Source: Bugula neritina
Lineage: Eukaryota; Animalia; Bryozoa
Assembly: GCA_964035545.1 (NCBI GenBank)
Contig: OZ037765.1
Span: forward strand, 310,001-374,000
Length of the DNA stretch: 64,000 nt
Reading direction: 5' to 3'
Positions 2,932 through 56,118 of this stretch are shown here, in pieces. The notes below the pieces were generated by a model. The model saw nothing but the letters and a program-made list of their open reading frames with translations. It made no database searches and was not told the origin of the DNA. The position numbers and the translations under genes were made by a program. Positions within the stretch are counted from its first letter, which is position 1. Each line of letters opens with the position of its first letter.

Positions 2932-2932
2932 G

Positions 2933-9956: not shown

Positions 9957-9967
9957 GGGGGGGGCGG
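9957..9967 (+). promoter_or_regulatory. Polypurine tract
   Basis: GGGGGGGGCGG immediately before the 3' LTR. Confidence 0.8.
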
Positions 9968-28800: not shown

Positions 28801-31274
28801 GATTATGTTATAGACTGATATTCCTGCCCTACATGGTTCAGATTATGTTATAGACTGGTATTCCTCCCCTACATGGTTCAGATTATGTTATAGACTGGTA
28901 TTCCTCCCCTACATGGTTCAGATTATGTTATATAGACTGGTATTCCTTCCCTACATGGTTCAGATTATGTTATAGACTGGTATTCCTGCCCTACATGGTT
29001 CAGATTATGTTATAGACTGGTATTCCTGCCCTACATGGTTCAGATTATGTTATAGACTGGTATTCCTGCCCTACATGGTTCAGATTATGTTATAGACTGG
29101 TATTCCTCCCCTACATGGTTCAGATTATGTTATAGACTGATATTCCTCCCCTACATGGTTCAGATTATGTTATAGACTGGTATTCCTGCCCTACATGGTT
29201 CAGATTATGTTGTAGACTGGTATTCCTGCCCTACATGGTTCAGATTATGTACCGGAACACGCTGCTCCACACTATAGAAGAGATCTTTGTCGTAGCCTTT
29301 GGCCCTCTCTCCGTCTTCTTCATCTTTGTGTTGGGGGTCATGCTGTGCGCCCTCACTCAGAGAGCTCTGGGTGGCTTCCCCCAGATTGGGCACAAGTTCC
29401 TCTTCTGTTTTGGAGTTCAGGCCATGATGGACCCCTTCTTTATAGCTGTCGTAGATGCTGCCATTAAGGTACTTTCTCAGGGCATCACTTGAGTATTACT
29501 ATGATATACTGGGTACTTTATACATACACAATAACTGTGTTATGTTTCAATACATGATACTCTCTATACTAGTTGTATTTGGTGTGAAACTTAGAGTTGG
29601 GACCTTCCAAACCTAGACGTAGACGGGGCGTTAGCTGACTTCTCAAAGATGTATTGGCACTTCAAGAGAACTGAAGGAACAGGGATTGGTGGAATATTTG
29701 TAACCTCCGTCATCTACTTGTTCACTCTGTTCATCTCCTCCTCTGTACTCTACATGTACTTTCTAAGGTAAGTATCACCTGTACTCTACATGTACTCTCT
29801 AAGGTAAGTATCATCTGTACTCTACATGTACTCCCTAAGGTAAGTATCATCTGTACTTTACATGTACTCTCTAAGGTAAGTACCCTCTGTGCTCTACATG
29901 TACTCTCTAAGGTAAGTATCATATGTACTCTCTAAGGTAAGTATCATATGTACTCTACATGTACTCTCTAAGGTAAGTATCATATGTACTCTACATGTAC
30001 TCTCTAAGGTAAGTATGATCTGTACTCTACATGTACTCCCTGAGGTAAATATCCTCTGTACTCTACATGTATTCCCTGAGGTAAGTATCCTCTGTACTCT
30101 ACATGTACTCTCTAAGGTAAGTGTGATTATCACCTGCTATAAAATATGAATATGTGAATCAGGTTTGATGAATCATGTTTTCTAATGACAAAGCATCAGT
30201 CTATTTGCAGACGTAGTCATTCAATATGGCCGACCATTCATTATATTTTGTTGTAGGCTACATAACAATGGCCGCATGCTGGACGTGTACTGGAGGTTAC
30301 ACGCATCAGAGAGTGAGTTGTATGTGCCTTATGACCTGGAGTTGTCATTCCCCGAGCTAGACGGTATCTGTAAGAAAGCTGATCAGTGGAGGGGAGAAGA
30401 AGGGGAGAGGAGGAAAGTATCGGTCTACGACTATCTGTGGGAAGAGGAATACGTAAGTATACGAGAAGATAATTTCTCAACTAATTACAAGACACATCAG
30501 CTATACTAGAGACCAGTGTGAAGAACCTGAGCTAAAGTTAGAGTAAATCAATTCTCATTCTATGTTGATGTCTTGCAGGAAGAAGATGGGAAAACTGTGA
30601 CTAGAAAAGAGAAGACAACTCATATTTCTATACACACAGTTCACCTTGATGGACTGAGAGAGTTGTATAGGCATTTCCTAGTAGCAGAAAATGGGGCCAT
30701 AGTGGAGGTACAGAAATATATATTTATATATAAATTAAAAATTGTCTTATGTGATCATGACCATTGGATATTATGTATATTATATACTGATAGAGTAGAT
30801 ATAATGTATGTATATTATATATTGATAGAGTAGATATAATGTATGTATATTATATATTGACAGAGTATTTGTAATGCAGGTATTTGGTGAACAAGCTGTA
30901 ACACAGTTGGAAGGGCGTACCAAAACACCCTTACCTAAGCAATCCAACTTTGGTTCCCAGCTAAGCATTCATAAGGTATATACTGGAATAGTTACTTACT
31001 AATTGACATGAAGCTATTGTAAACAAAGTTCCAACATACTAGAGGAGTTGTCTGCTCTATTCAACAGGAATATTCACACTCGGTAGCACCAGACATCACA
31101 CTTATGTGAATGAGTCATTCCCAGTCATTACTTGTACTATTGTAGGTCAAAGGTCGGTGTACTGTGTTTACTAGAGCTGGATTCAAAGAGGACACAACTC
31201 TAACAAGTGACACACTGGAGAGCAGACAATCCCCAGATAGTAAAATAGACACATTATACCAGACTAATAATTAG
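16886..31274 (+). CDS. OFCC1: OFCC1/ojoplano-like multi-pass membrane protein, ~19 coding exons
   Basis: Phase-consistent GT-AG exons: 16886-16991, 17176-17435, 17800-17932, 23048-23187, 23273-23414, 24020-24162, 24292-24461, 24611-24742, 24899-25033, 25200-25392, 26029-26205, 26755-~26889 (donor uncertain), 27268-27503, 29216-29468, 29595-29767, 30257-30452, 30579-30707, 30880-30975, 31146-31274 (last exon less certain). Coiled coil, then TPQPVQLKLKTLRGVKDKLP, a C2-like beta region, and a TM region with RIYVHYMGQWLYL and LYMYFLRLHNNGRMLDVYWRL. Family name is from memory. Confidence 0.72.
17445..17790. repeat. 24-bp AT-rich minisatellite filling an intron
   Basis: Unit TATACTATGTTATATAATATACTA, ~14 copies; source of the spurious MLYNILYT ORFs. 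Confidence 0.9.
18417..21736 (+). CDS. Ly6/uPAR (three-finger, quiver/sleepless-like) GPI-anchored protein, ~125 aa, nested gene; exons 18417-18474, 21235-21347, 21530-21736
   Basis: Signal peptide MKLSVCLFLLCSVMLHFSLA with a phase-1 intron; mature LKCYNC...CCDTNKCN with exactly 10 Cys; hydrophobic GPI-signal-like tail; AATAAA at ~21864; CCAAT-like boxes near 18220-18250. Confidence 0.92.
20488..21250. repeat. ~52-57-bp minisatellite spanning the acceptor of Ly6 exon 2
   Basis: About 14 units. The first unit has TATTCACAG|CTCTCAAGTGCTACA, a copy of the true junction TATTCTCAG|CTCTCAAGTGCTACA. Confidence 0.88.
23405..23985. repeat. 29-bp minisatellite repeating a splice donor (CCAG|GTGAAT)
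   Basis: Unit CCAGGTGAATATAGAATAGAGAGAAGGTA, ~19 copies, beginning at the exon end. Confidence 0.92.
25400..26015. repeat. 31-bp intronic minisatellite
   Basis: Unit GAGAAGGTGTAATATGCAGTATAGTTACACT, ~19 copies, filling the intron. Confidence 0.9.
26372..26600. repeat. 10-bp repeat (TAGTAATATR)n
   Basis: About 22 tandem units. Confidence 0.9.
26880..27270. repeat. Degenerate ~17-bp repeat (AGTATGTGTCAGTATAT)n filling an intron
   Basis: Each unit holds a GTATGT donor-like and a TCAG acceptor-like word. Confidence 0.8.
27520..29250. repeat. 40-bp minisatellite made of an acceptor plus the first 34 nt of the downstream exon
   Basis: Unit ACTGGTATTCCT(C/G)CCCTACATGGTTCAGATTATGTTATAG, ~43 copies; the last copy is the start of exon 29216. 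Confidence 0.95.
29744..30122. repeat. 36-bp minisatellite repeating an exon end plus donor (CTAAG|GTAAGT)
   Basis: Unit CTGTACTCTACATGTACTCTCTAAGGTAAGTATCAT, ~11 copies. Confidence 0.92.
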
Positions 31275-32136
31275 ACAAGTTTCCTACTTTTATATTCATA
31301 ATAATTATTATACAATACATGTATTTTATATTCATAATAAACATTATAAAATACATTTATTTTTATTATAAAAGTTAGATACACTAAAATATTTACTAAT
31401 TCCTTTATAATATTATTTAAACTTGTGTTTTTACCTGTTTAAATCCCTCACCTGCACACGTCGTAATATTTTTACAATAAAATTTTTATGATATTTATCA
31501 GATGTTTAATATCTATATTACTATTTTATTCTGAATACCAGATATAAAATATTTCTATATAAAACTTATGACTAAGAATTCTATAAATATAGGCAAACTC
31601 TTTCACCTGAGATGTAATTCTACTGAAATAAACATATCGCTGCCCTGTGCACTGCTTCTGCCTTTTATTTAATATTTGATGAGTCGTACTTCCTGTTTAA
31701 CAAGAAGTTACTGATACGGTTGAAAATATATTCTCAATCTGCACCTCATAATCAGCAGAATAAAGATTAATAATTTATTAATAAAGTAATATTAGGAAAA
31801 TGAAGGTAGTAGTACAATATAGCTATAATATACATCTTACAGGTTATAATTTAATGACAGTAAATATTACCATAACAATAATTAATATAATACAAACAGT
31901 TGATGTGATGGGTGCCAGTAGAAATAGCATAGATAGAAATGACGCAAATGGAGAAGTATGTAAAATGGTGCATTTTCATTTGAGGCAAATTTAACATCAG
32001 AGTGACATTTTTAAATACTTTTCCATTTATGCCATTTGTGTCTAAAATTGATGTGATGAATAGAAGCTAATATGATGAATGTGATGAATAGAAGCTATTC
32101 ATGTGATGAATAGAAGCTAATAGTGGCCACAAAGAA

Positions 32137-33142: not shown

Positions 33143-34121
33143 TATATAGTTCATCAGATAATACATATGATAACAGTATACTGTATATAGTGTATAGTTC
33201 ATCAGATAATATATATGATAACAGTATACTGTATATAGTATAACCAGTATAGTTCATCAGATAATATATATGATAACAGTATACTGTATATAGTATAACC
33301 AGTATAGTTCATCAGATAATATATATGATAACAGTATACTGTATATAGTATAACCAGTATAGTTCATCAGATAGTATATATGATAACAGTATACTGTATA
33401 TAGTATAACCAGTATAGTTCATCAGATAATATATATGATAACAGTATACTGTATATAGTATAACCAGTATAGTTTATCAGATAATATATATGATAACAGT
33501 ATACTGTATATAGTATAACCAGTATAGTTCATCAGATAATATATATGATAACAGTATACTGTATATAGTATAACCAGTATAGTTCATCAGATAATATATA
33601 TGATAACAGTATACTGTATATAGTATAACCAGTATAGTTCATCAGATAATATATATGATAACAGTATACTGTATATAGTATAACCAGTATAGTTCATCAG
33701 ATAATATATATGATAACAGTATACTGTATATAGTATAACCAGTATAGTTCATCAGATAATATATATGATAACAGTATACTGTATATAGTATAACCAGTAT
33801 AGTTCATCAGATAATATATATGATAACAGTAAACTGTATATAGTATAACCAGTATAGTTCATCAGATAATATATATGATAACAGTATACTGTATATAGTA
33901 TAACTAGTATAGTTCATCAGATAGTATATATGATAACAGTATACTGTATATAGGATATAGTTCATCAGATAATATATATGATAACAGTATACTGTATATA
34001 GGATATAGTTCATCAGATAATATATATGATAACAGTATACTGTATATAGTATAACCAGTATAGTTCATCAGATAGTATATATGATAACAGTATACTGTAT
34101 ACAGGATATAGTTTATCAGAT
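33143..34121. repeat. 55-bp minisatellite overlapping the stop codon and 3' UTR of Roco-caspase A
   Basis: About 18 units of TATAGTTCATCAGATAATATATATGATAACAGTATACTGTATATAGTATAACCAG; only ~5 units in copy B (48265-48540). Confidence 0.9.
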
Positions 34122-34269
34122 TCCGTGAAACTCAGGAAACAGATACAACTTCCTGTCCCTCGTCAGAGTATTCACGACTATTGGAGTCTGCGTCACGTAA
34201 ACTCGTGGGTTTCTCGCTCTGAGTTTCCCCGTTATTCTCCTCACTCTGCCCTTCACCTTCAAACAGTTC

Positions 34270-35560
34270 ATACGTATTATATACTGTAGATATATATTAT
34301 ATACTGTAGATACGTATTATATACTGTAGATATTTATTATATACTGTATATATGTACTATATACTGTAGATATATACTATATACTGTAGATATATATTAT
34401 ATACTGTAAATATGTATTATATACTGTAGATATATATTATATACTGTAGATATGTATTATATACTGTAGATATGTATTATATACTGTAGATATTTATTAT
34501 ATACTGTAGATATGTACTATATACTGTAGATATGTATTATATACTGTAGATATATATTATATACTGTAGATATATATTATATACTGTAGATATATATTAT
34601 ATACTGTAGATATGTATTATATACTGTAGATATATACTATATACTGTAGATATATATTATATACTGTAAATATGTATTATATACTGTAGATATGTATTAT
34701 ATACTGTAGATATGTATTATATACTGTAGATATTTATTATATACTGTAGATATATACTATATACTGTAGATATATATTATATACTGTAAATATGTATTAT
34801 ATACTGTAGATATATATTATATACTGTAGATATGTATTATATACTGTAGATATATACTATATACTGTAAATATGTATTGTATACTGTAGATATTTATTAT
34901 ATACTGTAGATATATACTATATACTGTAGATATGTATTATATACTGTAGATATATATTATATACTGTAGATATATACTATATACTGTAGATATATATTAT
35001 ATACTGTAAATATGTATTATATACTGTAGATATATATTATATACTGTAGATATGTATTATATACTGTAGATATATACTATATACTGTAGATATATATTAT
35101 ATACTGTAGATATGTATTATATACTGTAGATATATATTATATACTGTAGATATGTATTATATACTGTAGATATGTATTATATCACTGTAGATATGTATTA
35201 TATACTGTAGATATGTATTATATATTGTAGATATATATTATATACTGTAGATATATATTGTAGATATATAATATATACTGTAGATATATGTTTATATACT
35301 ATAGATATATATTGTAGATATATATTATATACTGTAGATATGTATTATATACTGTAGATATATGTTATATACTGTAGATATATTTTGTAGATATATAATA
35401 TATATTGTAGATATATGTTTATATACTATAGATATATATTGTAGATATATATTATATACTGTAGATATATATCATGTACTGTAGATATATGTTATATACT
35501 GTAGATATATATTATATACTGTAGATATACATATTATATACTGCTGATATACATATTATA
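34270..35560. repeat. 20-bp minisatellite (ATACTGTAGATATATATTAT)n filling the last caspase intron
   Basis: About 60 units in A versus ~17 in B (48690-49025); each unit has CTACAG on the minus strand. Confidence 0.92.
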
Positions 35561-35967
35561 TGCTACACTTACAACATGAAACAGCTTATCTAGGTCACGG
35601 TGACAAGCGTGTCTGTACAGAGTCTTCACCAGAGTTCTCATGACTAGAGATCCATAGTGACCAAACAACATCGCAGGGCAGTCTGTTGGAATAAACAATA
35701 ACATCAGTATTTAATAACAATGAGATCATGTGACTAGAGAAGTCATGTGACTGGAGAGATCATGTGACTGGAGAGATCATGTGACTAAATGAATAAGACT
35801 CAGAATTTCGTCACTACAGGTAATTCTTACTTTCAAAGCAGGAGTAGAGAATGAGGAGGTCATCAACATCAAAGTTCCTCTGTCCAGTTGATGTCTCAGC
35901 TTCCTGTTGACTCACTCTGAGAGCAGAGAGTTCTTGTGGAGGAGACACTCTCTTTGTTGGACTTCAA

Positions 35968-36350
35968 TAACTGTTTGACCTAGATATACAGTAGATAATT
36001 ATATATAACTGGTTGACCTAGATATACAGTAGATCATTATATATAACTGGTTGACCTAGATATACAGTAGATAATTATATATAACTGGTTGACCTACATA
36101 TACAGTAGATAATTATATATAACTGGTTGACCTAGATATACAGTAGATAATTATATATAACTGGTTGACCTAGATATACAGTAGATAATTATATATAACT
36201 GGTTGACCTAAATATACAGTAGATAATTATATATAACTGGTTGACCTAAATATACAGTAGATAATTATATACAACTGGTTGACCTAGATGTACAGTAAAT
36301 TATTATATAAAACCGTTTGACCTAGATATACAGTAGATAATTATATACTG
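35968..36350. repeat. 38-bp minisatellite spanning a minus-strand acceptor (TCTAG|GTCAACC)
   Basis: Unit GGTTGACCTAGATATACAGTAGATAATTATATATAACT; ~10 copies in A and ~14 in B (49556-50080). Confidence 0.9.
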
Positions 36351-37299
36351 ATACACTCTTATTACACAGGATAAGATAAAGGTATGAATTATATTTATCA
36401 GTATCAGCAATTTAATATAATATTCCAGAACTAAGTGAGAGCTACAAGAAATACACTCACCAACTCTACATGCTTGCATCACCACCACCTTAGGTTTACC
36501 AGCCATAGATGGAAAGTTAGCAGAGTTGAGTAACTTATATATATGTGACAGATAGACAGGGCTGCCATCTACTCCAGAGACAATGCCATTAGCTCCGTGT
36601 GCAAATATAAACAGGAAGAACACACCGTAACGGTTGTGGATCTCATCTTTTGTAACATCCACAATGCATTGCAGCATTTCCTGAAGATAAAATATCTCCA
36701 ATTTGATCAAAGAGAACATCGGTGTCGCAGTTAAAGATTAACTTAGAGAAGATCTAGATGTGAAAAAATAAAGGAAAAAGGTAGAAAAGGAGTGAATTCA
36801 TAGGAGGTACCTCAGCTGTGAGATTCTCCTTTTTGACAGGTTCCAGTCCCAACTTCCTACAGAGAATGAACGTATTCTTTAGATCAATGTGAGACCCTTT
36901 CCTCTCTCCTCCTTCATCATACATTCTGTTGTTTATAATCAGAGCTTTTCCTCTCACAGGACCCGACATCTTGTAGATCTACAGATAAGCATACATACAT
37001 GGTGGGTGCACATACAGGGTATTTGCAAGCATTGTATCATACTATAAATATGGTAACACACATAGTAGGCAGTGGCACTGTACATAAAGCAATGTCAATC
37101 AGAGTGATATGAACTATACAAACTTTTGATGTGTTTCTATAGCGAGATTTAATTCTTGTATTGGTAGTCGGAGTGACTGTTAAATGAGTGAGATCTCCCT
37201 CACAGGCGTCATTAAAGTCCTCTTCACTGGAGAGATCACTGAGTTCATCATCTGCTGGATGACCGGATGTAGCTCCAGGTACTCCTGTAGTACCTGTGA

Positions 37300-37523
37300 G
37301 TAACATATCTACAGATAGTAGTTTCTTACAGGTATTACCTACAGGTAGTAGTTTCTTACAGGTATTACCTACAGATAGTAGTTTCTTACAGGTATTACCT
37401 ACAGATAGTAGTTGCTTACATGTATTACCTACAGATAGTAGTTTCTTACAGGTATTACCTACAGGTAGTAGTTTCTTACAGGTATTACCTACAGATAGTA
37501 GCTGTTTACAGGTATTACCTACA
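37300..37523. repeat. 30-bp intronic minisatellite
   Basis: Unit ACAGATAGTAGTTTCTTACAGGTATTACCT, ~7 copies; counterpart at 51005-51220. Confidence 0.88.
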
Positions 37524-40500
37524 TTTTTTAATTGTTATCAACCAGTAGCTGATAGAGTATTAACGGCTTCTAACAAGGAAACACAAACACATGCAAACAT
37601 ACATACATACAGACAACTAAGGTGTACTATAGAGTGAAAGCACCCAACAAGTACCTGTTGGTGTATAGTAACTCTTCACAAACTGCTCCAACTCATTGAT
37701 ATTCTCAGCAGACAGCTGATAACCTGTGATGAGAAAGAGAACAAGTAACACACAATATTCACAATGTCAGCATGGTAATAGATAGACTGATTCTTCAGCA
37801 TTCAACTCACTAACACAACACTGCTGCCAAGAGGTACTTTAAAACCTGCAATTCTATATCTTAGTTGCCATATTTCAATATGTAACACAAATTAACACGT
37901 TTTATAGTTTTAAGTTTGCATAATCCAGACTCCAACCAGTTTAAGCTTCATATACTAATAAGTTAACCATGTATATAAAGACAAGCTACAATTTGATTGG
38001 TTTTCAATACTATTGTTTATACGTGGTCAGTATAGAGATATTAATCGGAAACATCAAATGACCAGCTAACTGCTAACACATTTATATAATATGGCTCAAA
38101 CAGGAAATAAGTTTCTACTAACAAGGATGTAAGAGACATGCTGGAACATTCTTGTACTTTCCGCACTCTTTAGATTTTGACTCAGCCACTGTGTGAAGAG
38201 GTTTATCTTTTTCGGGAGGTTGACACCAGCTTGGATTGATTTGTTGCTTTGGCCGCTTTTCTTCAACCAATGAGCAGTGAGTACAGGTATTGGTACATGT
38301 AATCTTACTTGCTCTCCATGTAGAGTTGACGTATTTCACTGTTGACTGAGTGGCAGAGGTCAACATTTTCCAAGCTCTACATATCTTCTGGCAGCTGGTT
38401 GCAACGGAAATGGTGAGTTTACGAGACTTGTAGTCGTGGAGCAGCTGTAGAATGCTATCATCGTCTGCCATCTCCACGCCGTTCTTTCTCACCATTTTTT
38501 CTGTACAGTTTTGGTAATCATTGAGAAGTTTCACTGAAATCTGGTGGTAGACATACTGGGGGAGGGGCAGCCCATCAAACGCCATGTCTACTGTTAGTTT
38601 CACAGGCTTTCTCTTGCAGGCAGTCAGGTTTGTAAGATAGTCCTGAGAGAAATATGGCATAGCATAGGTTGAGGTACCAGACGCATCATCCATCTTGAAT
38701 AGCAACTGAAAAGAGCTCAGTAATGTGACTGCCACGCCCATTTTTTCACTGCTGGTAAAGCTTGTTTCAGAAATCAAAAGATGTTGCAGCAGTTTCTCTC
38801 TCATCATCCCAGTTTGAAGAAACTCCTGGGCTAAGTCATTAAACTCAACGTCACAGTCAATCAGGAAGTCAACCAGAGTATCTTCTGTAATCTCTAACTG
38901 CCGCTTAGTCCACACTTCCTTCTCGTGAGTAAACAGCACATGAAGCAGTTCGGTTACCACAGATACGTCATAGAATATCAAAGTCTCCAGAATTTTCTTC
39001 TCTCGGTACCAAATGATATGACCACTGTTGTGTAGATAAGCCAGGATCGCTTTGAGTTGGTCTTCATCTGCTGATTTGTGTCGAGTGACCAGTTCAAGAA
39101 CTTCTCGAAATGTTTCGTAGCTTCCTTGGAGACTGCTGAGTGTCTGTGCGACATTCTTCCAGAGACTCGGCACTTTCTTCACAACTTGCTGACTCTCAGA
39201 GATGATCTGACTTCTCAAATCATCAAACACTGCCTCATACTCTGCTCCGACCACATAAACATCCTCCTTTCTAAACATCACATCATTCTTGAAATGACAA
39301 ATTTCTGCAAAACTTTTCCCTGGCCAGGCTGATGATTTTTCTTCCAGTCGTATCAGTTTAAGGACACTTTCAGTAGCTAAAAAGAAGTATGCCTTGAGCT
39401 CCTCAAATGCATCTTCACTGTAAGAATCTCGATGGGTAAAAACCAGTTTGGGAGCTCTAAGCTCCGGATTTGCCAGGTAGAGGTGTGACAGCCAATCAAA
39501 GTAGGCACAGCGGACAGCTTCATTTCCTCTCACCTTCAGATGCAACTCTTCAAATTTCTTCATACTTACAACAACAATGGGAATACAGTTTTGTTTGAGA
39601 GTGAACTGGTACGTAGATTGATATATTTCATTTCCGCCAAAGTCAATAAACTGAAGAGTGTTCTCCCCCACAGAGAGTTTCTCTATCCTAAACACCCTGG
39701 TGGTTTCATCTACTGCGGCATCAGCATCTCTATTGGTCAACTCTCTCACGCCATCCGATCTCAGAAGTGTTTTGATCAAACTAGTTTTCCCTGACATCGA
39801 ACAACCAATCACAGCGACAGTAGCTTCTGAGACGTCCAAGGAGCCACCAGACTGGATATCCTTGTAATACTGTTTGACAGCTTTAATTCCTTCTATACAA
39901 ACAGCATAAGGTGGGGATACGAGTGATTCACATCTCTCACAGCTCAGAGATGTGAGATTCTCCATATTCAGGAGTTCTGGGGTGTGTGATGTCATATGGC
40001 GGTTATTTGTCAGGTCAAGAGACTGGAGATTGGTCAACTGACTCAAGCTAAAAAGTAAACATATATATAACATAGTTCTAAACCAGGTTTTGATGATTTA
40101 ATCATACATATTTTAGTTATAGCGGAAAGTTGAGCTAGTTGAGCCATGGCGCTAGTAAATGGTTGAAATATATGGTTTAAACTTTCTCTTTTAAATCATT
40201 GCACCATTTTATCTCCTCTACTTAAGAGTGTTTTAGGTTAACTACCAGACATATGGAAGTATATGAAATCAAAACAAAAGCTTTCAGGTGCGCGAGTATT
40301 TGTCACAATTTTGCATAAAACATGAGAAAACTGCAGATGAGTTTTGATACAAAATAGAATTAATATTATTGCCAAGAGGATGTAAATCCAAAACGCAGGA
40401 CAATATTTATAATGTTGTAAAACAGCAACTATTGGTGCTAGTGAGGAAAGATTAAGAGTTGTGTTCTCTCAGTGTGTTCCTCTCGCCAGTAGATTATACT

Positions 40501-43426
40501 GTCATTGAATTGAAATACAAACCACTACTATTTCCATAATTAGCAGATATTTTCATTACAAGTTAATATAATATATTAGATAAATATATTCAAATGACTC
40601 ACCTGTCTGGTAATGTCTCTAAGTTATTCCAAGACACATCTAATGTGTGTAGCTGTGTGATTTGAGAGATGCTGTAATATATAATATAGTCAAGTATATG
40701 ATACAGTATATGTAGAATTATATTATAAACAGGATCTTTATATCTATATATTATAGCTATACAACTAGAGATAACTTGACCTAAATAATAGATACAAATG
40801 TAATATATTTATAACCTTGTTAACATTTTAGAATATATCCAAATCATTAGAGCAATTATATTAAATGACTGCTGCCATTATTACTGCTGCTGTTGCTATA
40901 AGTTACAGACTGCAGACTGAAGAATAATTTAGTTGAATATTTTATCATTATTTGAATATCAACTTATTTTATCTCCATTATATTATACATATACTCAGTT
41001 TATACTATTATATAATACAATTAAGTTAGATGAAAACATGACTATAACCACAGTTACCAGTACAGTTATGACTCTACAGTTACCACTGTTGCTGGGTAAT
41101 GCATTATGATATTATTAAAAATATCTATAGTGAAAGTTAATATAATAATAGTAGATATATAACTCACTCATCTGGTAATGTCTCTAATTTACAGTAACTC
41201 AGATACAACTTTCTAAGTGACTTCATCTTCAACAGTACGTCTGGTAATGTCTTCAAGTTATTCCCAGACACATATAATGTGTGTAGCTGTGTGAGTTGAG
41301 AGATGCTATAATATACAATATAGTCAAGTATATGATACAGTATGTAGGCCTATATACATGTTATATACAGTATCTTTATATCTACATATTACATAATTAT
41401 TATACCCAGGTAAACATAATGTAACTAAACCAACACTATTTACAAGTACATATAATATATTAGACAAATATGACTCACCTGTCTGGTAATGTCTCTAAGT
41501 TATTCCGAGACACATTTAATGTGTCTAGCTGTGTAAGTTGAGAGATGCTGTAATATACAATATAGTCAAGTATATGATACAGTATGTAGGCCTATATACA
41601 TGTTATATACAGGATCTTTATATAATATCTACATGTTACATAATTATTATACACAGGTAAACATAATATAACTAAACAAACACTATTTACAAGTTAATAT
41701 AGTATATTAGACAAATATGACTCACCTGTCTGGTAATGTCTCTAACTTATTCCCAGACACATCTAATGTGTGTAGCTGTGTGAGTTGAGAGATGCTGTAA
41801 TATACAATATAGTCAAGTATATGATGCAGTATATAGGCTATATATGTTATATACAGTACCTTTATATCTACATAATTATTATACACAGGTAAACATAATG
41901 TAACTAAACTAACAATGTATTTCCAACTAAATATAGTATATATTAGATAAATATGACTCACCTGTCTGGTAACGTCTTTAAGTTATTCCCATACACATAT
42001 AATGTGTGTAGCTGTGTGAGTTGAGAGATGCTGTAATATACAAACAATGAGATTAATGAGATATTACATACCAATGAGGTCATTGTCACACATGACATTA
42101 GGTTTAACAAAAAATATATTTAGTAGAAGAGTTAATATAATAATAGTAGATATATAACTCACTCATCTGGTAATGTTTCTAGTTTACAGAAACTCATATT
42201 CAACTCTCTAAGTGACTTCATCTTCAACAATACATCTGGTAATGTCTTTAAGTTATTCCCTAACACATTTAATGTGTGTAGCTGTGTGAGCTGAGAGATG
42301 CTGTAATATACAAACAATGAGATTAATGAGATATTATATACCAATGAGGTCATTGTCACACTTGACATTAGGTTGAGGTATATTTACTCAAGTCACTTTA
42401 GAGTTACACTATACTATATACTATAGAAAGTGCTACTATATCCATCTAGTAGAGCTATATACTAGCAGCAGGTAGAGAGTATACAGCTGAGGTGTAAAGC
42501 AATGTTATACAGTACTATTACCTGGGCTACAATTTTCAGAGTGTTGTAGAGTTGTCTTACCCACAGTGATGCTGTATGAAAAGATTAGCACATGTGAGAG
42601 GAGGAATATGATAGGCTGATGTGATGTGTGACTGACCAATCAGAGCTTACAGTGAACAGTCAACAAAGATCAACAGGGTGAAGGAAGGACATGTAAGGGA
42701 CTTAGGCTACAATCACTATCCGAACAGGGCAGAGTAGAGATAGGTGAGGATTAACAGGTCATATAGGGTAGGTGAAAATTAATGGGTAGGAAAACATGTC
42801 AACACCAGTTTGGAGTTGTCACACAACTGGAGTGGATATGGACTTACTAGTCTAAACTTCTTGGATCTTTTATTCCTTCGATACACAAGTTAGTTACAAG
42901 TGGAGCAAACTCCTTGATAGTAGAAGGTACATCTCCCTTTATCTTCAAGTGTGTGATCACATGACCTGCAGTTGAAGCCATAATCTCTTCCTTCGTGTAC
43001 AGCTGTGTCTCTTGGTTATACAACTCTCTCTTACTCTCAATTGGTTCCATACCAGAGTGTCTCCACCAACAGTCGTATTTTTCTGCAAAACTCAGTGTCA
43101 CATGTCACACATGTCACACGTGTCACATGTCACAGTATACATACAGCACATATATATCATGATACATCTGACATACAGTAACCTGGCAGGCTGCTACTCC
43201 ACATTGTAACTAATACTAAGTATAAATACCTGGAGGTGCACCTGCTGCCACCTGTCCATCCCCTGAACCACCTGCTGACTCGTCAGCCATCTTGTCTCCT
43301 TCCCCAAGTGCTACTCTGAAAGACAAGTTATACTCAGGTGTAGGTGTGGTGAGAGAGTGACCTATTTGTATACATGTATATTCACAGAGAACTGAGAGAG
43401 AGAGATAGAGGGCAATAGAACAAGCT

Positions 43427-43440: not shown

Positions 43441-45586
43441 TGTGTAAACTATACCAACACCTGAGCACTTAATATCAGTTACTATGAGGTTAGCCTGTAA
43501 CTACATAACAAGATACTAGAAGGGTGGTTTTTTAGGAGCCCTTACTAAGCACACAATACTAACCACATTGAAAATTCAGTATGCATTGTATTCTGGGGAA
43601 GGCCGAAGGCCCATTGCTCAGTTAGTGCATTAGTCGAAAATTAGTAGAAACATGATATAGTTAAAGGCATCCTCACTGAGAATATTATAAATTTCACTCA
43701 CAATCTAGTTTAAGTTCTTGTTATATTATTGCTCTGTTATAGGTGGCATGCGTGTTGCCTACTTGTGATTGTTTAGCCTGAGACTACACTATGATTATTA
43801 GCAGCTGCCTCAATTAAGGGCTGCATCATCTATCAACATCCCATTATGGCTGCTTTATAAACTAAGTACACAGCAAGCTATTCTCTAGCCTGTCAACTAG
43901 CAAGCCTGTAATTAGTAATATATGCATTAGTATCTTCTCATCTCCAAGTGTTCACTGAAGCATGAAGTGTTGTGCAAGGGTGGTTTAATTAGTATTTTTA
44001 TTTCACAGTTCATATAAAAATGACAGCTATAGGCAATGAACTCAAAATATCCAGTTCAATGGCTATATAGTGACTGCAATTCTATTCTAGCTACAGCCAG
44101 TCAGCTTATATAGGCCCTTCATATGTTGACTATTAACTGAAAAACTAAAGTAAAAAATATTAAAGCCAAGCAAACATTTTGGGTCTACTGTACTGTATTT
44201 ATGATAAGCTTGGTGAAAGTTTACCTCATAGTTTATAAAAAATAGTTTGCATTTGAAGTTGGCGTCAAAAAATTATTGGTATTGAATAAAATAGTAAATT
44301 TCTGGCTTGGCAGTTAATTATTTGATATCACATATTTAATCTCTAAAATTATCTGTAAGCTGCTAAACTGCATTAGTCTATGATATTATTCTTAATATCA
44401 GTAAATACAAGCATTGAAGACAAAGAATAATAAACATCTTGGACGCTACTCTAAAATTAAATAACCAAAGCTGCACAACTTACACCAAACCAAACAACTC
44501 CACAAGATATGTAGATCAGGGCAACATTATTAGTATATAAGAGCTCATGCAGACCCACCAAATAAAACCTCACCTATAAACTAAAATTTAAAAACCATGT
44601 TGTAGATCTTCCTGTTGCTCAGAGCAACTTTTTGAAATGTTCAATAAATAATTTTAATTCTAATAATAATTCTACTAATTTTCAGACCAATGCACCTTCG
44701 GAATATTGCTCCGTCCCCCTGCAATAAACTGCTACCAACTTTCTTACTGTCCCCACACTCTATTCTATCAAATTTCAAAGTTAACTGACTCCTTGATAAA
44801 CAAACAGTATGTCACAACAGTTACATAGCACTTTGAAAATCACAACACAATTACTTTGACAGCATAATTGTATCGCTACAACATTCCACAATATAAGGCT
44901 ACTAGAAGGTATAAATTATGGGATAATATAAACATAGCTTTAGTAAACAGATACAAACATTACAGAGACTTACCTGTTACCTGAATAAATATTTCTCTTC
45001 TGGTAAAATATATTCACCACCAAGATGAAGGAAAGAGAAGTATTTCAGTACTAGGTAGTAGTAGAGTTACACAGTCAAGTCAGGTCTCTTGAGAGATGCC
45101 ACCTTTACTATGCATTACTTATTTAAATAATGGTTAATAGACAGCCACTAAACTACAACTATAACTTACATACTATAAGGAAGTTTCAGTTCGTTGTAGA
45201 CAACATATTAATCAGGAACTCACACTGCGTGACGGAATGTTAGCAGATGGAATGTTGGCACAAAGGGTTAAAGGTCATATATTACTCAGTCTAGGCGAAG
45301 CCTTTGAAAATCAATCTATCAGCAGCTGCAGGCACCTCTTCTGATTGGTAAAGTCAATGAAGTGGAACTGAAAATATTCCTAGTTCAGTGGGTAGAGTTG
45401 TGCTTCCCTAAAAACATAGCTTAAGTGTTTGATAAATTGTCAAGTGCTTTTAAATGCTGGCATAATTTTTGCATCATTCCAATGACGAGTTGATTAAGGA
45501 CACATCAGCTATACCAGAGACCTGTGTGAAGGACCTGAGCTAAATTTAGAGTGAATCAACTCTCATTCTATGTAGATGTCTTGCAG

Positions 45587-46236
45587 GAAAAAGATGGGAA
45601 AACTGTGACTAGAAAAGAGAAGACAACTCATATTTCTATACACACAGTTCACCTTGATGGACTGAGAGAGGTGTATAGGCATTTCCTAGTAGCAGAAAAT
45701 GGGGCCATAGTGGAGGTACAGAAATATATATTTATATATAAATTATATATTGTCTTATGTGATCATGACCATTGGATATTATGTATATTATATATTAATA
45801 GAGTAGATATAATGTATATATTATATATTGATAGAGTATTTGTAATGCAGGTATTTGGTGAACAAGCTGTAACACAGTTGGAAGGGCGTACCAAAACACC
45901 CTTACCTAAGCAATCCAACTTTGGTTCCCAGCTAAGCATTCATAAGGTATATACTGAAATACTTACTTACTGAAGGTATTGTCAACAAAGTTCCAACATA
46001 CTAGAGGAATTGTCTGCTCTATTCAACAGGAATATTCACACTCAGTAGTACCAGACATCACACTTATGTGAATGAGTCATTCCCAGTCATTACTTGTACT
46101 ATTGTAGGTCAAAGGTCGACGTACTGTGCTTACTAGAGCAGGATTTAGAGAGGACACAACTCTAACAAGTGACACACTGGAGAGCAGACAATCCCCAGAT
46201 AGTAAAGAAGACACATTACAACAGACTAATAATTAG
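45587..46236 (+). pseudogene. Duplicated last three exons of the OFCC1-like gene (orphan fragment or alternative 3' end)
   Basis: EKDGKTVTRKEKTTHISIHTVHLDG.., VFGEQAVTQLEG.. and VKGRRTVLTRAG..QTNN*, with intact splice sites and frames; no upstream exons were duplicated. Confidence 0.8.
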
Positions 46237-47096
46237 ACAACTTTCCTATTTTTATATTCATAATAATTATTATACAATACATGTATTTTATATTCATATA
46301 ATTATTATATAATACATGTATTTTATAATCATAATAAATATTATATAATACATGTATTTTTATTATGAAATTTAGATACAATAAAATATTTACTAATTTT
46401 CTTATAATATTATTTAAACTTGTGTTTTTACCTGTTTAAATCTCACACCTGCATGTCATAATATTTTTACAATAAAACTCGTATGATATTTATCAGATGT
46501 TTAATATCTATTTCTATTACTACTTTATTCTGAATACCAGAGATATAATATTTCTATATAAAACTTATGACTAAGAATTCTATAAATAGAGGCAAACCCT
46601 TTCACCTGATATGTAATTTTACTAAAATAGACATATCATTGCCCTGTGCACTGCTTCTGCCGTATATTTTTTATTCGATGAGTCTTACTTCCTGTTTAAC
46701 AGGAAGTTGCTGATATGATTGAAAGTATATTTTCAATCTGCACCTCATAGTCATCAGAATAAAGATTAATAATTTATTACCTAATAATAGTAATATTAGG
46801 AAAATGAAGGTAGAAGTGTAGCTGGCCACATTAGTACAATAACTATAATATACATTTAACAGGTTAACAATAATATAATACCAACAGCTGATGTGATGGG
46901 TGCCAGTAGAAATAGCACAGGTAGAGATGACCCAAATGGAGAAGTATGTAAAATGGTGCATTTTCATTATGGGGGCTTTGGGTGGAGGGTTTGAGGCAAA
47001 TTTAACATCAGTGTGACATTTTTAAATACTTTTCCATTTATGCCATTTGTATCTAAAATTGATGTGATGAATAGAAGCTAATAGTGGCCACAAAGA

Positions 47097-48533: not shown

Positions 48534-51500
48534 TCAGATTCCGTGAAACTCAGGAAACAGATACAACTTCCTGTCCCTCGTCAGAGTATTCACGACTATT
48601 GGAGTCTGCGTCACGTAAAGCTCTGGCCTTCTCGCTCTGAGTTTCCCCGTTATTCTCCTCACTCTGCCCTTCACCTTCAAACAGTTCATACGTATTATAT
48701 ACTGTAGATATGTAGTATATACTGTAGATATATACTATATACTGTAGATATATACTATATACTGTAGATATATATTACATACTGTATGTATATATTATAT
48801 ACTGTAGATATATATTATATACTGTAGATATATATTATATACTGTAGATATATACTATATACTGTAGATATGTATTATATACTGTAGATATATATTACAT
48901 ACTGTAGATATATATTATATACTGTAGATATATATTATATACTGTAGATATGTATTATATACTGTAGATATATATTATATACTGTAGATATATACTATAT
49001 ACTGTAGATATATATATTATATACTACACTTACAACATGAAACAGGTCATCTAGGTCACGGTGACAAGCGTGTCTGTACAGAGTCTTCACCAGAGTTCTT
49101 ATGACTAGAGATCCGTGGTGACCAAACAATATCGCACGGCAGTCTGTTAGAATAAACAATAACATCAGTATTTACTATTTAATAACAATGAGATCATGTG
49201 ACTAGAGAGGTCATGTGACTCAAGGGATCATGTGACTTGACATATCATGTGACTAAAGAGGTCATGTGGCTAGAGAGGTTGTGTGATTGAAAAAATCATG
49301 TGACTAGAGAGGTCATGTGACTAGAGAAGTCATGTGACTCAAGGGGTCGTGTGACTGAAGAGATCATGTGACTAATTAAATAAGACTCGGATTTCTGTCA
49401 CTACAGGTAATTCTTACTTTCAAAGCAGGAGTAGAGAATGAGGAGGTCATCAACATCAAAGTTCCTCTGTCCAGTTGATGTCTCAGCTTCCTGTTGACTC
49501 TCTCTGAGAGCAGAGAGTTCTTGTGGAGGAGACGACTTTCTTTGTTGGACTTCAATAACTGGTTGACCTAGATATACAGCAGATAATTATATATAACTGG
49601 TTGACCTAGATATACAGTAGATCATTATATATAACTGGTTGACCTATATATACAGTAGATGATTGTATATAACTGGTTGACCTAGATATACAGTAGATAA
49701 TTATATATAACTGGTTGACCTAGATATACAGTAGATCATTATATATAACTGGTTGACCTAGATATACAGTAGATCATTATATATAACTGGTTGACCTAGA
49801 TATACAGTAGATTATTATATATAACTGGTTGACCTAGATATACAGTAGATTATTACATATAACTGGTGGACCTAGATATGCAGTAGATTATTATATATAA
49901 CTGGTTGACCTAGATATGCAGTAGATAATTATATATAACTGGTTGACCTAGATGTACAGTAGATAGTTATGTATAATTAGTTGACCTAGATATACAGTAG
50001 ATAATTATATATAACTGATTGACCTAGATATACAGTAGATAATTATATATAACTGGTTGACCTAGATATACAGTAGATGATCAGCAATGTGATGGAATAT
50101 ACCAGAACTAAGTGAGAGCTATAAGATATACACTAACCAACTCTACACGCTTGCATCACCACCACCTTAGGTTTACCAGCCATAGATGGAAAGTTAGCAG
50201 AGTTAAGTAACTCATAGATCTTTGACAGGCTGACAGGGCTGCTATCCACTCCAATGACAGTGCCATTAGCTCCATGTGCAAATATAAACAGGAAGAACAC
50301 ACCGTAACGGTTGTGGATCTCATCTTTTGTAACATCCACAATGCATTGCAGCATTTCCTGAAGATAAAATATCTCCAATTTGATCAAAGAGAACATCGGT
50401 GTCGCAGTTAAAGATTAACTTAGAGAAGATCTAGATGTGAAAAAATAAAGGAAAAAGGTAGAAAAGGAGTGAATTCATAGAAGGTACCTCAGCTGTGAGA
50501 TTCTCCTTTCTAACAGGTTCCAGTCCCAACTTCCTACAGAGAATGAACGTATTCTTTAGATCAATGTGAGACCCTTTCCTCTCTCCTCCTTCATCATATA
50601 TTCTGTTGTTTATAATCAGAGCTTTTCCTCTCACAGGACCTGACATATTGTAGATCTACAGATAAACAGATAAACATACATACGTATCTTCTTAAACACA
50701 CTGTGGCAGCACATGCAGGGTATTTATAAGTAACACATCCTACTATAAACACGTTAACACACATAGTATGCAGTGGAGCTGTACATAAAGCAATGTCAAT
50801 CAGAGTGATATGAACTATACAAACCTTTGATGTGTTTCTATAGAGAGATTTAATTCTTGTGTTGGTAGTCGGAGTGACTGTTAAACCAGTGAGATCTCCC
50901 TCACATGTGTCATTAAAGTCCTCTTCACTGGAGAGATCACTGAGTTCATCATCTGCTGGATGACTGGAAGTAGTTCCAAATACTCCTGTGGCACCTGTGG
51001 GTAACATATCTACAGATAGTAGTTACTTACAGGTATTACCTACAGGTAGTAGTTTCTTACAAGTATTACCTACAGATAGTAGTTACTTACAGGTATTACC
51101 TACAGTTAGTAGTTACTTACAGGTATTACCTACAGATAGTAGTTACTTACAGGTATTACCTACAGATAGTAGCTTCTTACAGGTATTTCCTACAGATAGT
51201 AGTTACTTACAGGTATTATGTACATTCTTTAATCGTTATCAACCAGTAGCCTGATAGAACATTAACAGCTTTTAGCTGTGCAAGGAAACACCTACACACA
51301 ACTAACGTATACTATAGACTGAAAGCACCTAACAAGTACCTGTTGGTGTATAGTTACTCTTCACAAACTGCTCCAACTCATTGATATTCTCAGCAGACAG
51401 CTGGTAACCTGTGATGAGAAAGAGAACAAGTAACATACAATATTCACAATGTTAGCATAGTAATAGATACACTGATTCTTCAGCATTCAACTCACAAACA

Positions 51501-54500
51501 CAACGCTGCTGCCAAGAGGTACTTTACAAGCTACAATGCTATATCATAGTTGCCATATTTAAGCCAGTAACACAAATTAACACGTTTTATAGTTTTTACT
51601 TTGTATAATCCAGACTCCAACCAATTTAAGCTTCATATATTAATAAGTCAACCATCTATATAAAGACAAGCTATAATTTTATTGGTTTTCAATGCTATTG
51701 TTTATATGTTGTCAGTATAGAGATAATAACCTGAAACATCATATGACTAGCTAACTGCTAACACAATTATATAATATGGCTGACACAGGAAATAAGTTTC
51801 TACTAACAAGGATGTAAGAGACACGCTGGAACATTCTTGTACTTTCCACATTCACCAGATGATGACTCAGCCACTGTGTGAAGAGGTTCATCTTTCTCTG
51901 GTTGTTGACACCAGCTCGGATTAATATGTCGCTTTGGCCGCTTTTCTTCAACCAATGAGCAGTGAGCACAGATATTGGTACAAGTAATCTTACTTGCTCT
52001 CCACGTAGAGTTGACGTATTTCACTGTTGACTGAGTAGCAGAGGTCAACATTTTCCAAGCTCCACATATCCTCTGACAGCTGGTTGCAACGGAAATGGTG
52101 AGTTTACGAGACTTGTAGTCGTGGAGCAGCTGCAGATTGCTATCACCATTTGTTACCGCCACACCGTTTTTTCTGACCACTTTTTCTGTGCAGTATTGGT
52201 AACCATTGAGAAGACTCACTGAAATCTGGTGGTAGACATACTGGGGGAGGGGCAGCCCACCAAACGCCATGTCTACTGTTAGTTTCACAGGCTTTCTCTT
52301 GCAGGCAGTCAGGTTTGTGAGGTAGTCCTGAGAGAAATATGGCATAGCATAGGTTGGGGTACCAGACGCATCCTCCGTCTTGATTAGCAACTGAAAGGAG
52401 CTCAGCAATGTGACTGCCACATCCATTTTTTCTCTGCTGGTAAAGCTTGTCTCAGAAATTAGAAGATGTTGCAGAAGTTTCTCTCTCATCATCCCAGTTT
52501 GAAGAAATTCCTGAGCTAATTCATTGAACTCAACGTCACAATCAATCAGGAAGTCAACCAGAGTATCTTCTGTAATCCTTAACTGCCGATTAGTCCACAC
52601 TTCCTTCTCGTGAGTGAACAGCACATGAAGCAGTTCGGTAACCACAGATATATCATAGAATATCAAAGTCTCCAGACTTTCTTTCTCTCGGTACCAAATA
52701 ATATGACTACTGTTGTGTAGATAAGCCAGGATCACTTTGAGTTGGTCTTCATCTGCTAATTTGTGTCGAGTGACCAGTTCAAGAACTTCTGGAAATGTTT
52801 TGTAGCTTCCGTGAAGACTGTTGAGTGTCTGTGCAACATCCTTCCAGAGACTTGGCACTTCCTTCACAACTTGCTGACTCTCAGAGATGATCCGACTTCT
52901 CAACTCATCAAACACTGCCTCATACTCTGCTCCGACCACGTAAACATCCTCTCTTTCAAACATCACATGATTTTGGAAATGACGAATTTCTGCAAAACTT
53001 TTTCCTGGCCAAGGAAAACACCCTGCTGCTGATTTTTCTTCCAGTCGAATCAGTTTAAGGACACTTTCAGTAGCTAAAAGAAAATACTCTCTGAGCTCCT
53101 CAAATGCTTCTTCACTGTAAGCATCTCGATGGGTAAAAACCAGTTTGGGAGCTCTAAGCTCCGGATTTGCCAGGTAGAGGTGTGACAGCCAATCAAAGTA
53201 GGCACAGCGAACGGCCTCATTACCCTTCACCTCCAGATACAACTCTTCAAATTCTTTCATGTTTACAACAACAATGGGAATACAGTTTTGTTTGAGAGTG
53301 AACTGGTACGTAGATTGATATATTTCATTCCCACCAAAGTCAATAAACTGAAGAGTGTTCTCCCCCACAGAGAGTTTCTCTACTCTAAACACCCTCGTGG
53401 TTTCATCTACTGCGGCATCAGCCTTTCTATTGGTCAACTCTCTCACACCATCCGATCTCAGAAGTGTTTTGATCAAACTTGTCTTCCCTGACATCGAACA
53501 ACCAATCACTGCGACAGTAGCTTCTGAGACTTCCAGGGAGCCACCAGACTGGATATCTTTGTAATACTGTTTGACAGCTCCAATTCCTTCTATACAAACA
53601 GCATAAGGCGGGGATACAAGTGATTCACATTCCCTGCAGTCCAGAGATGTGAGATTCTCCATATTCAGGAGTTCAGGGGTGAGTGATGTCATACGGCGGT
53701 TCTTCATCAGGTCAAGAGACTGGAGATTGGTCAGCTGACTCAAGCTAAAAAGTAAACATAGTTCTAAACCAGAATAGTTTTGGTGATTTAATTGTATATA
53801 TTTTAGTTATAGGGAAAGTAGGGCTAGTTGAGCCATGGCGCTAGTAAATAGTTGAAACACATTGTCTAAATTATCTCCTTTACATCATTGAACCATTTCA
53901 TCTCTTTTACTTAAGAGTGTTTTAGGTTAACTACCAGACATATGGAAGTATATGAAACCAAAGCCAAGGTTTTCAGGTGCGCGAGTATTTTCACATTTTT
54001 TGCATAATATATTATATACAGTATACGTAGGCCTATATTTTATCTTACACAGCATCCTGCTATCTGCTGTATATACTATAGTTACACAGGTGAAGATAAC
54101 TTGACCTAAATAATGTAATATATTTTATATAACCGTGCTAACATTTTAAAATATCCTAATCATTGGAGAGCAATTATATTAAATGACTGCTACTATTATT
54201 ACTGCTGCTGTTGCTAAGAGTTACAAGCTGCAGACTGAAGAATAATTTAGTTTAATATTTTATCATTATTTGAGTATCAACTTATCTTATATTCATTATA
54301 TTATACATACTCAGTGTATACTATTATGATGTACCACCTTTACTCCTGCTACAAATTATATTATGACTAATGAGCAAATATCTATAGTGAGAGTTAATAT
54401 AATAATAGTAGATATATGACTCACTCATCTGGTAATGTCTCTAAGTAACAGCTACTCAGATTCAACTTTCTAAGTGACTTCATCTTCAACAGTACATCTG

Positions 54501-56118
54501 GTAATGTCTCTAAGTTATTCCCAGACACATATAATGTGTGTAGCTGTGTGAGTTGAGAGATGCTGTAATATATAATATAGTCAAGTATATGATACAGTAT
54601 CCATAGGCCTATATACATGTTATATACAGTATCTTTATATCTACATATTACAAGATTATTATACACAGGTAAACATAATGTAACTAAACTAACACTATTT
54701 ACAAGTTAATATAGTATATTAGACAAATATGACTCACCCGTCTGGTAATGTCTCTAAGTAATTCCAAGACACATCTAATGTGTGTAGCTGTGTGAGTTGA
54801 GAGAAACTGTAATATATAACATAGTCAAGTATATGATACAGTATATATAGGCTGTATACATGTTATATACATTATCTTCATATCTACATATTACATAATT
54901 ATTATACACATGTAAACATAATGTAACTAAACTAACACTATTTACAAGTTAATATAGTATATTAGATAAATATGACTCACCTGTCTGGTAATGTCTTTAA
55001 ATTATTCATAAACACATTTAATGTGTGTAGCAGTGTGAGTTGAGAGATACTATAATATACAATATAGTCAAGTATATGATACAGTGTGTAGGCCTATATG
55101 TTATATACAGTATCTTTATATCTACATATTACATAATTATTATACACAGGTAAACATAATGTAACTAAACTAACACTATTTACAAGTTAATATAGTATAT
55201 TAGACAAATATGACTCACCTGTCTGGTAATGTCTCCAACTTATTCTGAGACACAACTAATGTGTGTAGCTGTGTGAGCTGAGAGATGCTGTAATATACAA
55301 ACAATGAGATTAATGAGATATTACATACCAATGAGGTCATTGTCACACTTGACATTAGGTTGAGGTATATTTACTCTAGTCACTTTAGAGTTACACTATA
55401 CTATATGCTATAGAAAGTGCTACTATATCCATCTAGTAGAGCTATATACTAGCCGCAGGTAGGGAGTACACAGCTGAGGTGTAAAGCAATGTTATACAGT
55501 ACTATTACCTGGGCTACAATTTTCAGAGTGTATTAGAGTTGTCTGACCCACAGTGAGACAGTATGAAATAAGTAGCACATGTGAGAGGAGGAATATGATA
55601 GGCTGATATTTGGAGTTGTCACGCAACTATATAGAGTGGATATAGACTTACTAGTCTAAACTTCTTGGATCATTTATTCCTCTGATATACAAGTTAATTA
55701 CAAGTGGAGCAAACTCCTCGATAGTAGAAGGTACATCTCCATCTATCTTCAAGTGAGTGATCACATGACCTGCAGTTGAAGCCATGATTTCCTCCTTCGT
55801 GTAGAGCTGTGTTTGTCGGAATAACAACTCTATCTCATCGTCAATTGGTTCCATACCAGAGTGTCTCCACCAACAGTTGTATTTCTCTACAAAACATAAT
55901 ATATCTCTTAGAACTCAGTGTCACACATGTCACACATGTCACACATGTCACACATGTCACAGTATACATACAGTACATATATACCATGATACATCTGTAC
56001 ATATAGTAACCTGGCAGGCTGCTACTCCACATTGTAACTAATACTAAGTATAAATACCTGGAGGTGCACCTGCTGCCACCTGTCCCTCCCCTGAACCATC
56101 TACTGGCTCGTCAGCCAT
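48534..56118 (-). CDS. LRR-Roc-COR-caspase fusion protein, copy B (MFHAS1-like Roco with a C-terminal peptidase C14 domain), ~1201 aa, intact
   Basis: Exons (-): 56118-56058, 55886-55652; LRR cassettes 55287-55219, 55049-54981, 54806-54738, 54562-54425; Roc-COR 53744-51808; 51408-51340, 50994-50825; caspase 50655-50488, 50357-50138, 49567-49418, 49143-49034, 48674-48534. All are GT-AG and phase-consistent, totalling 3606 nt with one open frame. P-loop GCSMSGKTS, G3 DFGG, G4 THRD; caspase YNM..RGKALIINN, RKGS, AHG, GKPKVVVMQACRV, DLLILYS, QTP...TL..KLYLFP. Confidence 0.88.

Follow-up and report, generated by a model that had tools for sequence, protein, structure and literature searches.

The window analyzed here is a stretch of 64,000 nt from Bugula neritina (contig OZ037765.1, positions 310,001 to 374,000, assembly GCA_964035545.1), and its minus strand carries a gene that encodes leucine-rich repeats (LRR), a Roc-COR GTPase module, an acidic linker and a caspase domain, in this order, in one reading frame. 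This gene (copy B, 56118-48534; coordinates are those of the window) has a complete exon structure, is spliced between COR and caspase, retains intact GTPase motifs and differs from its tandem paralogue, copy A, in its LRR cassettes. The fusion gene is thus real and spliced, and encodes one chain. Sequence comparison finds the same one-chain layout in Watersipora and Bugula and, apparently of independent origin, in amphioxus.

Gene structure and transcripts

Copy B consists of 14 exons with AG acceptors and GT donors throughout (Table 1), and its coding length of 3606 nt corresponds to 1201 amino acids and a stop codon in a single frame. The frame was verified by phase arithmetic and junction codons: the phases match, the junction codons are sense and no internal stop is present, as had been proposed in an earlier reading made from the letters alone (hereafter, the sequence-only reading). 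The long open reading frame (ORF) that covers Roc-COR appears to end with HPC-stop, but this stop sits within a GTTAGT donor at 51807, and the exon with the QACRV motif closes with the same type of donor. The codons at the first of these junctions had been given as CCT T/GT TAT, which is correct for copy A; copy B reads CCT T/GT TAC. At the 5' end, the frame is open ahead of the ATG at 56118 and an acceptor is located 25 nt before it; the N-terminus of copy B could be slightly longer or include an extra 5' exon.

Positions 50100-56099 were compared with contigs from four runs, probably of RNA, that belong to three studies. The 399-nt intron that follows COR (51409-51807), and with it the apparent stop, is skipped in contigs of all four runs, with CT..AC ends on the plus strand, and each of the next three introns is skipped in two or three runs. 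In run X2, a single contig of 1028 nt (record 9) begins in COR, includes the 69-nt exon, the acidic exon and caspase exon 1, and reaches the catalytic exon; RNA across 51808, 51408, 50994 and 50655 had been proposed as a check in the sequence-only reading. The transcripts are 91-96% identical to copy B and are mosaic, agreeing with copy A at 20 of the 35 differences listed.

These joints bear on whether the locus instead holds two neighboring genes, a Roco gene ending at HPC-stop and a separate caspase gene, joined only by occasional read-through splicing. Such an arrangement is very improbable and largely refuted, since the spliced joint is present in 4 of 4 runs, intronic depth over the key intron is nil in three of them, no separate start for the caspase is seen, and the linker exons are kept in single-chain Watersipora RefSeq proteins and at a B. 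neritina locus. It would account for the unspliced frame running into a stop, and for one contig, in run X4 only, that crosses the 399-nt intron unspliced (depth 15 vs. 41 spliced); this contig may equally represent DNA, pre-mRNA or intron retention.

Table 1. Exons of copy B, and the position of copy A
Feature	Positions	Strand	Remarks
Exon 1	56058..56118	-	start ATG 56118; 20 low-complexity residues
Exon 2	55652..55886	-	N-terminal cap ahead of the LRRs; spliced to an LRR exon in an RNA contig
LRR cassette exon 1	55219..55287	-	69 nt, phase 2-2
LRR cassette exon 2	54981..55049	-	69 nt, phase 2-2
LRR cassette exon 3	54738..54806	-	69 nt, phase 2-2
LRR cassette exon 4	54425..54562	-	138 nt, two repeats, phase 2-2; joint 53744/54425 in RNA contigs
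Large exon	51808..53744	-	last LRRs and cap, Roc GTPase, COR-A, COR-B, Cys-rich tail
Linker exon	51340..51408	-	69 nt, phase 1-1
Acidic linker exon	50825..50994	-	family-conserved [DE][LVI]SD motif, ELSD in copy B
Caspase exon 1	50488..50655	-	start of large subunit; Arg179 equivalent in RKGSHID
Caspase exon 2	50138..50357	-	catalytic His (AHG) and Cys (QACRV)
Caspase exon 3	49418..49567	-	Asp-free intersubunit linker and start of small subunit
Caspase exon 4	49034..49143	-	small subunit; Arg341 equivalent is Leu; family HxCHRD signature
Caspase exon 5	48534..48674	-	to the stop codon
Copy A (tandem paralogue)	34116..43290	-	16 exons, 6 LRR exons, same S1 Leu as copy B

Introns at 49567-50078, 48700-49020, 51000-51220 and 34290-35560 are filled by minisatellite arrays. 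The repeat unit, such as that of 38 nt ahead of caspase exon 3, includes splice acceptor sequence, and many decoy acceptors therefore precede the real one.

Relatives and origin of the fusion

Homology searches were run exon by exon. For the Roc-COR exon, 83 relatives were found with E <1e-30, and those that are named belong to Watersipora subatra and B. neritina. RefSeq labels the Watersipora relatives "MFHAS1 homolog", and at least 10 of its Watersipora proteins have Roc-COR and caspase in one chain. Most of the exons tested match single Watersipora proteins collinearly (e.g. P0215, residues 38 to 1832). Two exons have no real match to these proteins because of their small size or divergence, namely the 69-nt exon and the intersubunit-linker exon. 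The exon order is identical at the B. neritina genomic locus. The same search recovered the amphioxus protein BRAFLDRAFT_67388 (LRR-Roc-COR-C14), one of 12 LRR-Roc-COR-caspase models found across Branchiostoma species (others include BRAFLDRAFT_80701 and 75631).

The identity of Roc-COR between bryozoans and amphioxus is only 22-24%. In Roc-COR trees, which were quick, used a subset of rows and have a long bryozoan stem, the two groups form separate, fully supported clades, and the caspase-bearing Rocos of amphioxus are intermixed with Rocos that bear GT4, OTU or death effectors. Approximately unbiased (AU) tests reject a union of bryozoans and amphioxus, with p of 6.6e-5 for the caspase-bearing amphioxus proteins only and 0.008 for all amphioxus proteins. 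This rejection points to independent fusion of the caspase in the two lineages, which is likely, although not proven.

The bryozoan Roc-COR falls among animal MFHAS1-like sequences, outside the bacterial clade. Horizontal transfer from bacteria was also considered and is unsupported: bacterial Rocos form a separate clade, and the nearest outside sequences lie on gene-sparse, eukaryote-like contigs, some with CARD.

Among other animal proteins with this core, a lancelet LRR-Roc-COR family (P0159-P0203) swaps its C-terminal effectors between caspase, GT4 glycosyltransferase, OTU and death domains. LRR-Roc-COR-CARD proteins were also found (P0131 from Lingula, and P0146), and these would be the adaptor-using counterpart of the caspase fusion.

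The putative GTPase switch

The Roc-COR block recognized by the sequence-only reading was borne out by both profile and structure comparisons. Pfam matched LRR and, above the gathering cut-off, Roc (E 2.4e-7); directly after Roc follow COR-A (E 4.6e-6) and COR-B (E 0.054), neither of which reaches the cut-off. A structure predicted from an alignment of the Roc-COR exon (pLDDT 85.7) has LRRK1, LRRK2 and C. tepidum Roco (CtRoco) as its top folds and also matches isolated COR, with E from 5e-21 to 7e-9 against the LRRK1, CtRoco and isolated COR structures. The motifs G1 (GCSMSGKT), G2 (Thr), G3 (DFGG) and G4 (THRD) are intact and are conserved in 58-60 of 60 relatives. Together with COR-A and COR-B, they place the protein among the Rocos. 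The dN/dS of Roc-COR between copies A and B is about 0.3, and these comparisons indicate purifying selection on the GTPase motifs. A NACHT or NB-ARC ATPase was not found, nSTAND1 matching only the P-loop with E 0.043; the NTPase is a Roc GTPase. A protein kinase domain of the LRRK/DAPK kind is absent from all exons scanned with Pfam. The exon ends in a tail of the form CxHC...C...C, with three cysteines invariant in the family and the codon of the last Cys straddling the splice junction; this tail is a probable zinc site.

CtRoco dimerizes through COR-B (PMC6337361); it is a dimer when GDP-bound or empty and becomes a monomer upon GTP binding (PMC5714945). The sequence-only reading had supposed that ligand binding drives Roc-COR into a dimer, and had proposed assays of GTP-dependent dimerization. 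The direction of this drive is unsupported as stated, because GTP monomerizes CtRoco; by analogy, the switch may run opposite to the simplest GTP-dimer model. If the CtRoco logic carries over, the caspase would be on in the dimer that holds GDP or no nucleotide, and mutation of the P-loop could make the protein constitutively active.

The caspase domain and its substrate pocket

Peptidase_C14 of Pfam matched two exons (E 6.8e-13 and 5e-5), and the small-subunit exons match the full C14 domains of Watersipora proteins; homology to the caspase fold thus covers the large and the small subunit. The best PDB match of the protease is CED-3, followed by caspase-2/3. The His/Cys dyad is intact in both copies (AHG, QACR), and in the catalytic pentapeptide QACRV the Gly after Arg is replaced by Val. 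The S1 pocket of caspases is built from Arg179, Gln283 and Arg341 (PMC11236938). In copies A and B the equivalents of Arg179 and Gln283 are kept and that of Arg341 is Leu (register via P0042 aligned to caspase-3). Of 8 Watersipora fusions, 7 have Arg at the last position and one has Lys; Arg is also present at the B. neritina locus and in the one amphioxus model scored. Furthermore, the intersubunit linker, from QACRV to the first small-subunit strand, contains no Asp, versus 3-8 in relatives. Another change of S1 in the family was seen in a paralogue on a JGI metagenome contig (L002:5021-5248), where Val replaces Gln283 (VACR).

The protease of the sequence-only reading therefore stands as to fold and dyad; a conventional Asp-specific output of copies A and B is doubtful because the S1 trio is incomplete, with Leu for Arg341, and the linker lacks an Asp site. 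From these residues, an altered specificity or a cFLIP-like role as modulator or decoy is plausible for the pair. The pair is atypical within the family; most likely, its specificity is weak or is not for Asp, or it modulates canonical members in the way that cFLIP modulates caspase-8.

The same joins as in copy B had been claimed for copy A. All of them are present, but a 1-nt deletion in the exon at 35979-35831 shifts the frame about ten codons past QACRV and leads to a stop, so that copy A as assembled is truncated after the catalytic Cys and lacks the small subunit. The deletion could be an assembly error, or could be bypassed via the frame-keeping AGs downstream of it (35947 and 35932).

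One could go further and regard the pair as decaying or as decoys, with a catalytically irrelevant caspase, copy A being a pseudogene and the product at most an LRR-Roc-COR scaffold or a dominant-negative for active paralogues. The Leu where relatives mostly have Arg, the Asp-free linker, QACRV and the frameshift of copy A would all be expected from such decay, and dN/dS exceeds 1 between the copies in the two small-subunit exons (very few sites). However, dN/dS is about 0.4 in the large-subunit exons, His, Cys, Arg179 and Gln283 are all kept, the caspase is included in spliced transcripts, and the lesion of copy A amounts to one base with the possible explanations given above. We therefore regard decay as unlikely.

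Upstream of the caspase, the [DE][LVI]SD motif is kept in 13 of the 14 retrieved bryozoan models that reach the linker, and may be a candidate release site or phospho-site. The sequence-only reading had recognized no CARD, DED or death domain, and Pfam concurs for exon 2, the Roc-COR exon and the acidic exon. Exon 2 (55652..55886) resembles the N-termini of Watersipora fusion proteins and has no death-fold match, and neither exon 1 nor the 69-nt exon is long enough for a death-fold prodomain. By eye and in the ORF list, no upstream CARD/DED exon was seen, although small exons could be missed in this way.

The putative LRR sensor and the tandem copy

The LRRs are encoded by cassette exons, 69 or 138 nt long and of phase 2-2, whose number and order differ between the copies, copy A having six LRR exons (8 repeats) and copy B four (5 repeats). 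In pairwise counts over ten comparable LRR units, taken from non-independent pairs, the exposed xxLxLxx positions gave pN 0.244 vs. pS 0.027 and the remaining positions pN 0.043 vs. pS 0.135. By this comparison, the LRR variation is focused on the concave face. A sensor-like, immune-receptor-like gene family, as previously suggested, is in keeping with cassettes that vary both in number and on this face. Other joints were seen in the RNA at 54425-55652, namely exon 2 directly to the last LRR exon, a 69-nt LRR exon directly to the Roc exon, and extra 69-nt repeats; they reflect either alternative skipping of LRR exons or alleles or paralogues with different arrays, which the contigs cannot separate.

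The tandem duplication comprises about 30.5-43.4 kb and 45.5-56.2 kb. The Roc-COR exon of copy A (40047-38123) is about 92% identical in nucleotides to that of copy B and its flanking intron 91%. The introns of the caspase part (49418-50655 vs. 35831-36978) are closer between the copies, e.g. 129/130 nt, a pattern suggestive of gene conversion at the 3' end. The duplication also took in exon-like pieces of a plus-strand gene that lie downstream of both Roco copies (30484-31363 and 45493-46324) and are 94% identical; the piece tested has no Pfam match.

Elsewhere in the window

A Ty3/gypsy-type retrotransposon with long terminal repeats (LTRs) occupies 2661-10238 on the plus strand. Its 271-bp LTRs (2661-2931 and 9968-10238) are 100% identical, and thus the insertion is very recent. 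The gag-pol ORF (2993-7813, 1606 codons) encodes protease, reverse transcriptase, RNase H and integrase, and is followed by ORFs at 7786-8451 and 8517-9422, the latter with a C2H2-like Cys/His pattern and no Pfam match.

Proposed role

We think it probable that the family represents an expanded and diversifying set of bryozoan single-chain cytosolic LRR-Roc-COR-caspase receptors, similar to NLR and Apaf-1 and with a built-in caspase. The LRR face would bind a foreign or damage ligand, and binding would shift the nucleotide cycle of Roc. A COR-B-mediated dimer would then bring two C-terminal caspase domains together, and their activation by proximity, as is normal for initiator caspases, would lead to cell death or inflammatory cleavage. 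By analogy with CtRoco, the active dimer would be GDP-bound or nucleotide-free and the GTP-bound monomer resting. In favor of such receptors are the exon structure with its spliced RNA, the collinear single-chain relatives, the conserved GTPase motifs, the Roc-COR fold and the LRR variation on the concave face, for which brown algal ROCOs provide a parallel. Moreover, CARD or death domains form the C-terminus of sister animal Rocos, and the Rocos of amphioxus swap effectors, as bacterial counter-invader Rocos do.

Several points weigh against this proposal. No member has a demonstrated ligand, infection-induced expression or protease activity, and the nucleotide/dimer logic is taken from CtRoco, a bacterial protein that is only distantly related. 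The RNA-aligned stretch ends before the three caspase exons that encode the small subunit. With the identity and mosaic differences given above, the RNA represents another individual's allele or a near paralogue and is not assignable to copy B, so that copy B's own expression is unproven. To these may be added the unspliced X4 contig and the non-independence of the LRR pairs.

Another possible explanation is that the family gates developmental or homeostatic programmed cell death in the colony (polypide regression, metamorphosis), or else allorecognition, and thus senses self proteins rather than microbes. The Roco proteins LRRK1/2 and DAPK1 have roles in trafficking and death, polypides are routinely recycled in bryozoans, and self/non-self receptors likewise diversify their LRR faces. 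However, tandem expansion, turnover of LRR copy number and effector swapping typify genes in host-pathogen conflict, and we consider a role in self-sensing rather improbable.

More tentatively, and with more doubt than confidence, the immune-receptor proposal may be extended: bryozoans may have independently built a large NLR-like receptor class on a Roco with a hard-wired caspase, diversifying both the LRR face and the protease pocket, in which members like the present pair cut non-Asp substrates or tune partners. If true, bryozoans would have the first caspase gated by a GTPase, and its activity would be the simplest way to read the Roc-COR monomer-dimer cycle directly. To our knowledge, characterized animal caspase platforms all use STAND ATPases or death receptors with death-fold adaptors. 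A Roc-COR-gated caspase would be a different route of activation, reached at least three times (bacteria, amphioxus and bryozoans). Which nucleotide or oligomer state of Roc-COR is "on" is a question of the LRRK2 field, and caspase activity would report that state directly because caspases need dimers. Furthermore, the rebuilt S1 pocket would be a natural test of a change in caspase specificity. These prospects are tempered in that the architecture is already in published tables, the function is a prediction, and copy B may be a weak or decoy member.

Comparison with known systems

The sequence-only reading knew of no characterized animal Roco with a caspase effector. The novelty that this implies does not hold for the architecture: the layout has been catalogued in bacteria and is present in amphioxus. 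Kaur et al. (2021, Fig. 6D; PMC8195603) predicted that bacterial LRR+AP-GTPase+COR+caspase proteins are counter-invader systems (36-38 occurrences per source file), and their supplement includes a protein from a sponge in which Roc-COR is combined with DED, TRADD-N and caspase. In amphioxus, Zhang et al. (2008; PMC2575513) described "LRRs-caspase" hybrids and proposed a shortcut from recognition to apoptosis, and Huang et al. (2014; PMC4284660) tabulated the Roc-caspase domain pair for lancelets, as "Miro;Peptidase_C14", in a list starting with Suppl. Table 21. The claim that no animal Roco-caspase has been characterized is upheld so far: in a literature search that mostly did not cover subscription journals, we found neither a description of a bryozoan Roco-caspase family nor an experimental study of any Roco-caspase in any organism.

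With the bacterial proteins, the bryozoan fusion shares the identical domain order, variable LRRs, a C-terminal effector slot and the proposed immune role. However, its protease is a metazoan-type p20/p10 caspase, its gene is spliced and its Roc-COR lies outside the bacterial clade. The amphioxus models have the same architecture in an animal, and the same shortcut has been proposed for them, but they form a separate clade with low Roc-COR identity, intermixed with Rocos bearing other effectors; the published "LRRs-caspase" hybrids may be the same as these Branchiostoma models. MFHAS1/MASL1-type Rocos, which the Watersipora relatives resemble by RefSeq name, have the LRR-Roc-COR core without a kinase, to which the bryozoan protein adds a C-terminal caspase, a multi-copy family and cassette LRR exons. 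Candidate immune receptors of the ROCO type in brown algae likewise have one LRR per exon, exon turnover, diversification of the concave face and family expansion (PMC3341825, PMC11378527); they lack the caspase, and a small group carries another C-terminal peptidase (IPR009003).

In functional logic, the putative receptor resembles NLR inflammasomes and Apaf-1/CED-4 apoptosomes, which also combine a repeat sensor, a nucleotide switch and a proximity-activated caspase. It differs from them in using a Ras-like Roc and COR dimer instead of a STAND wheel, in having no CARD, DED or PYD, and in the covalent fusion of the caspase. A pairing of active and modulating members, as in caspase-8 and cFLIP, is possible within the bryozoan family, although, unlike cFLIP, the pair in this window retains the catalytic Cys.

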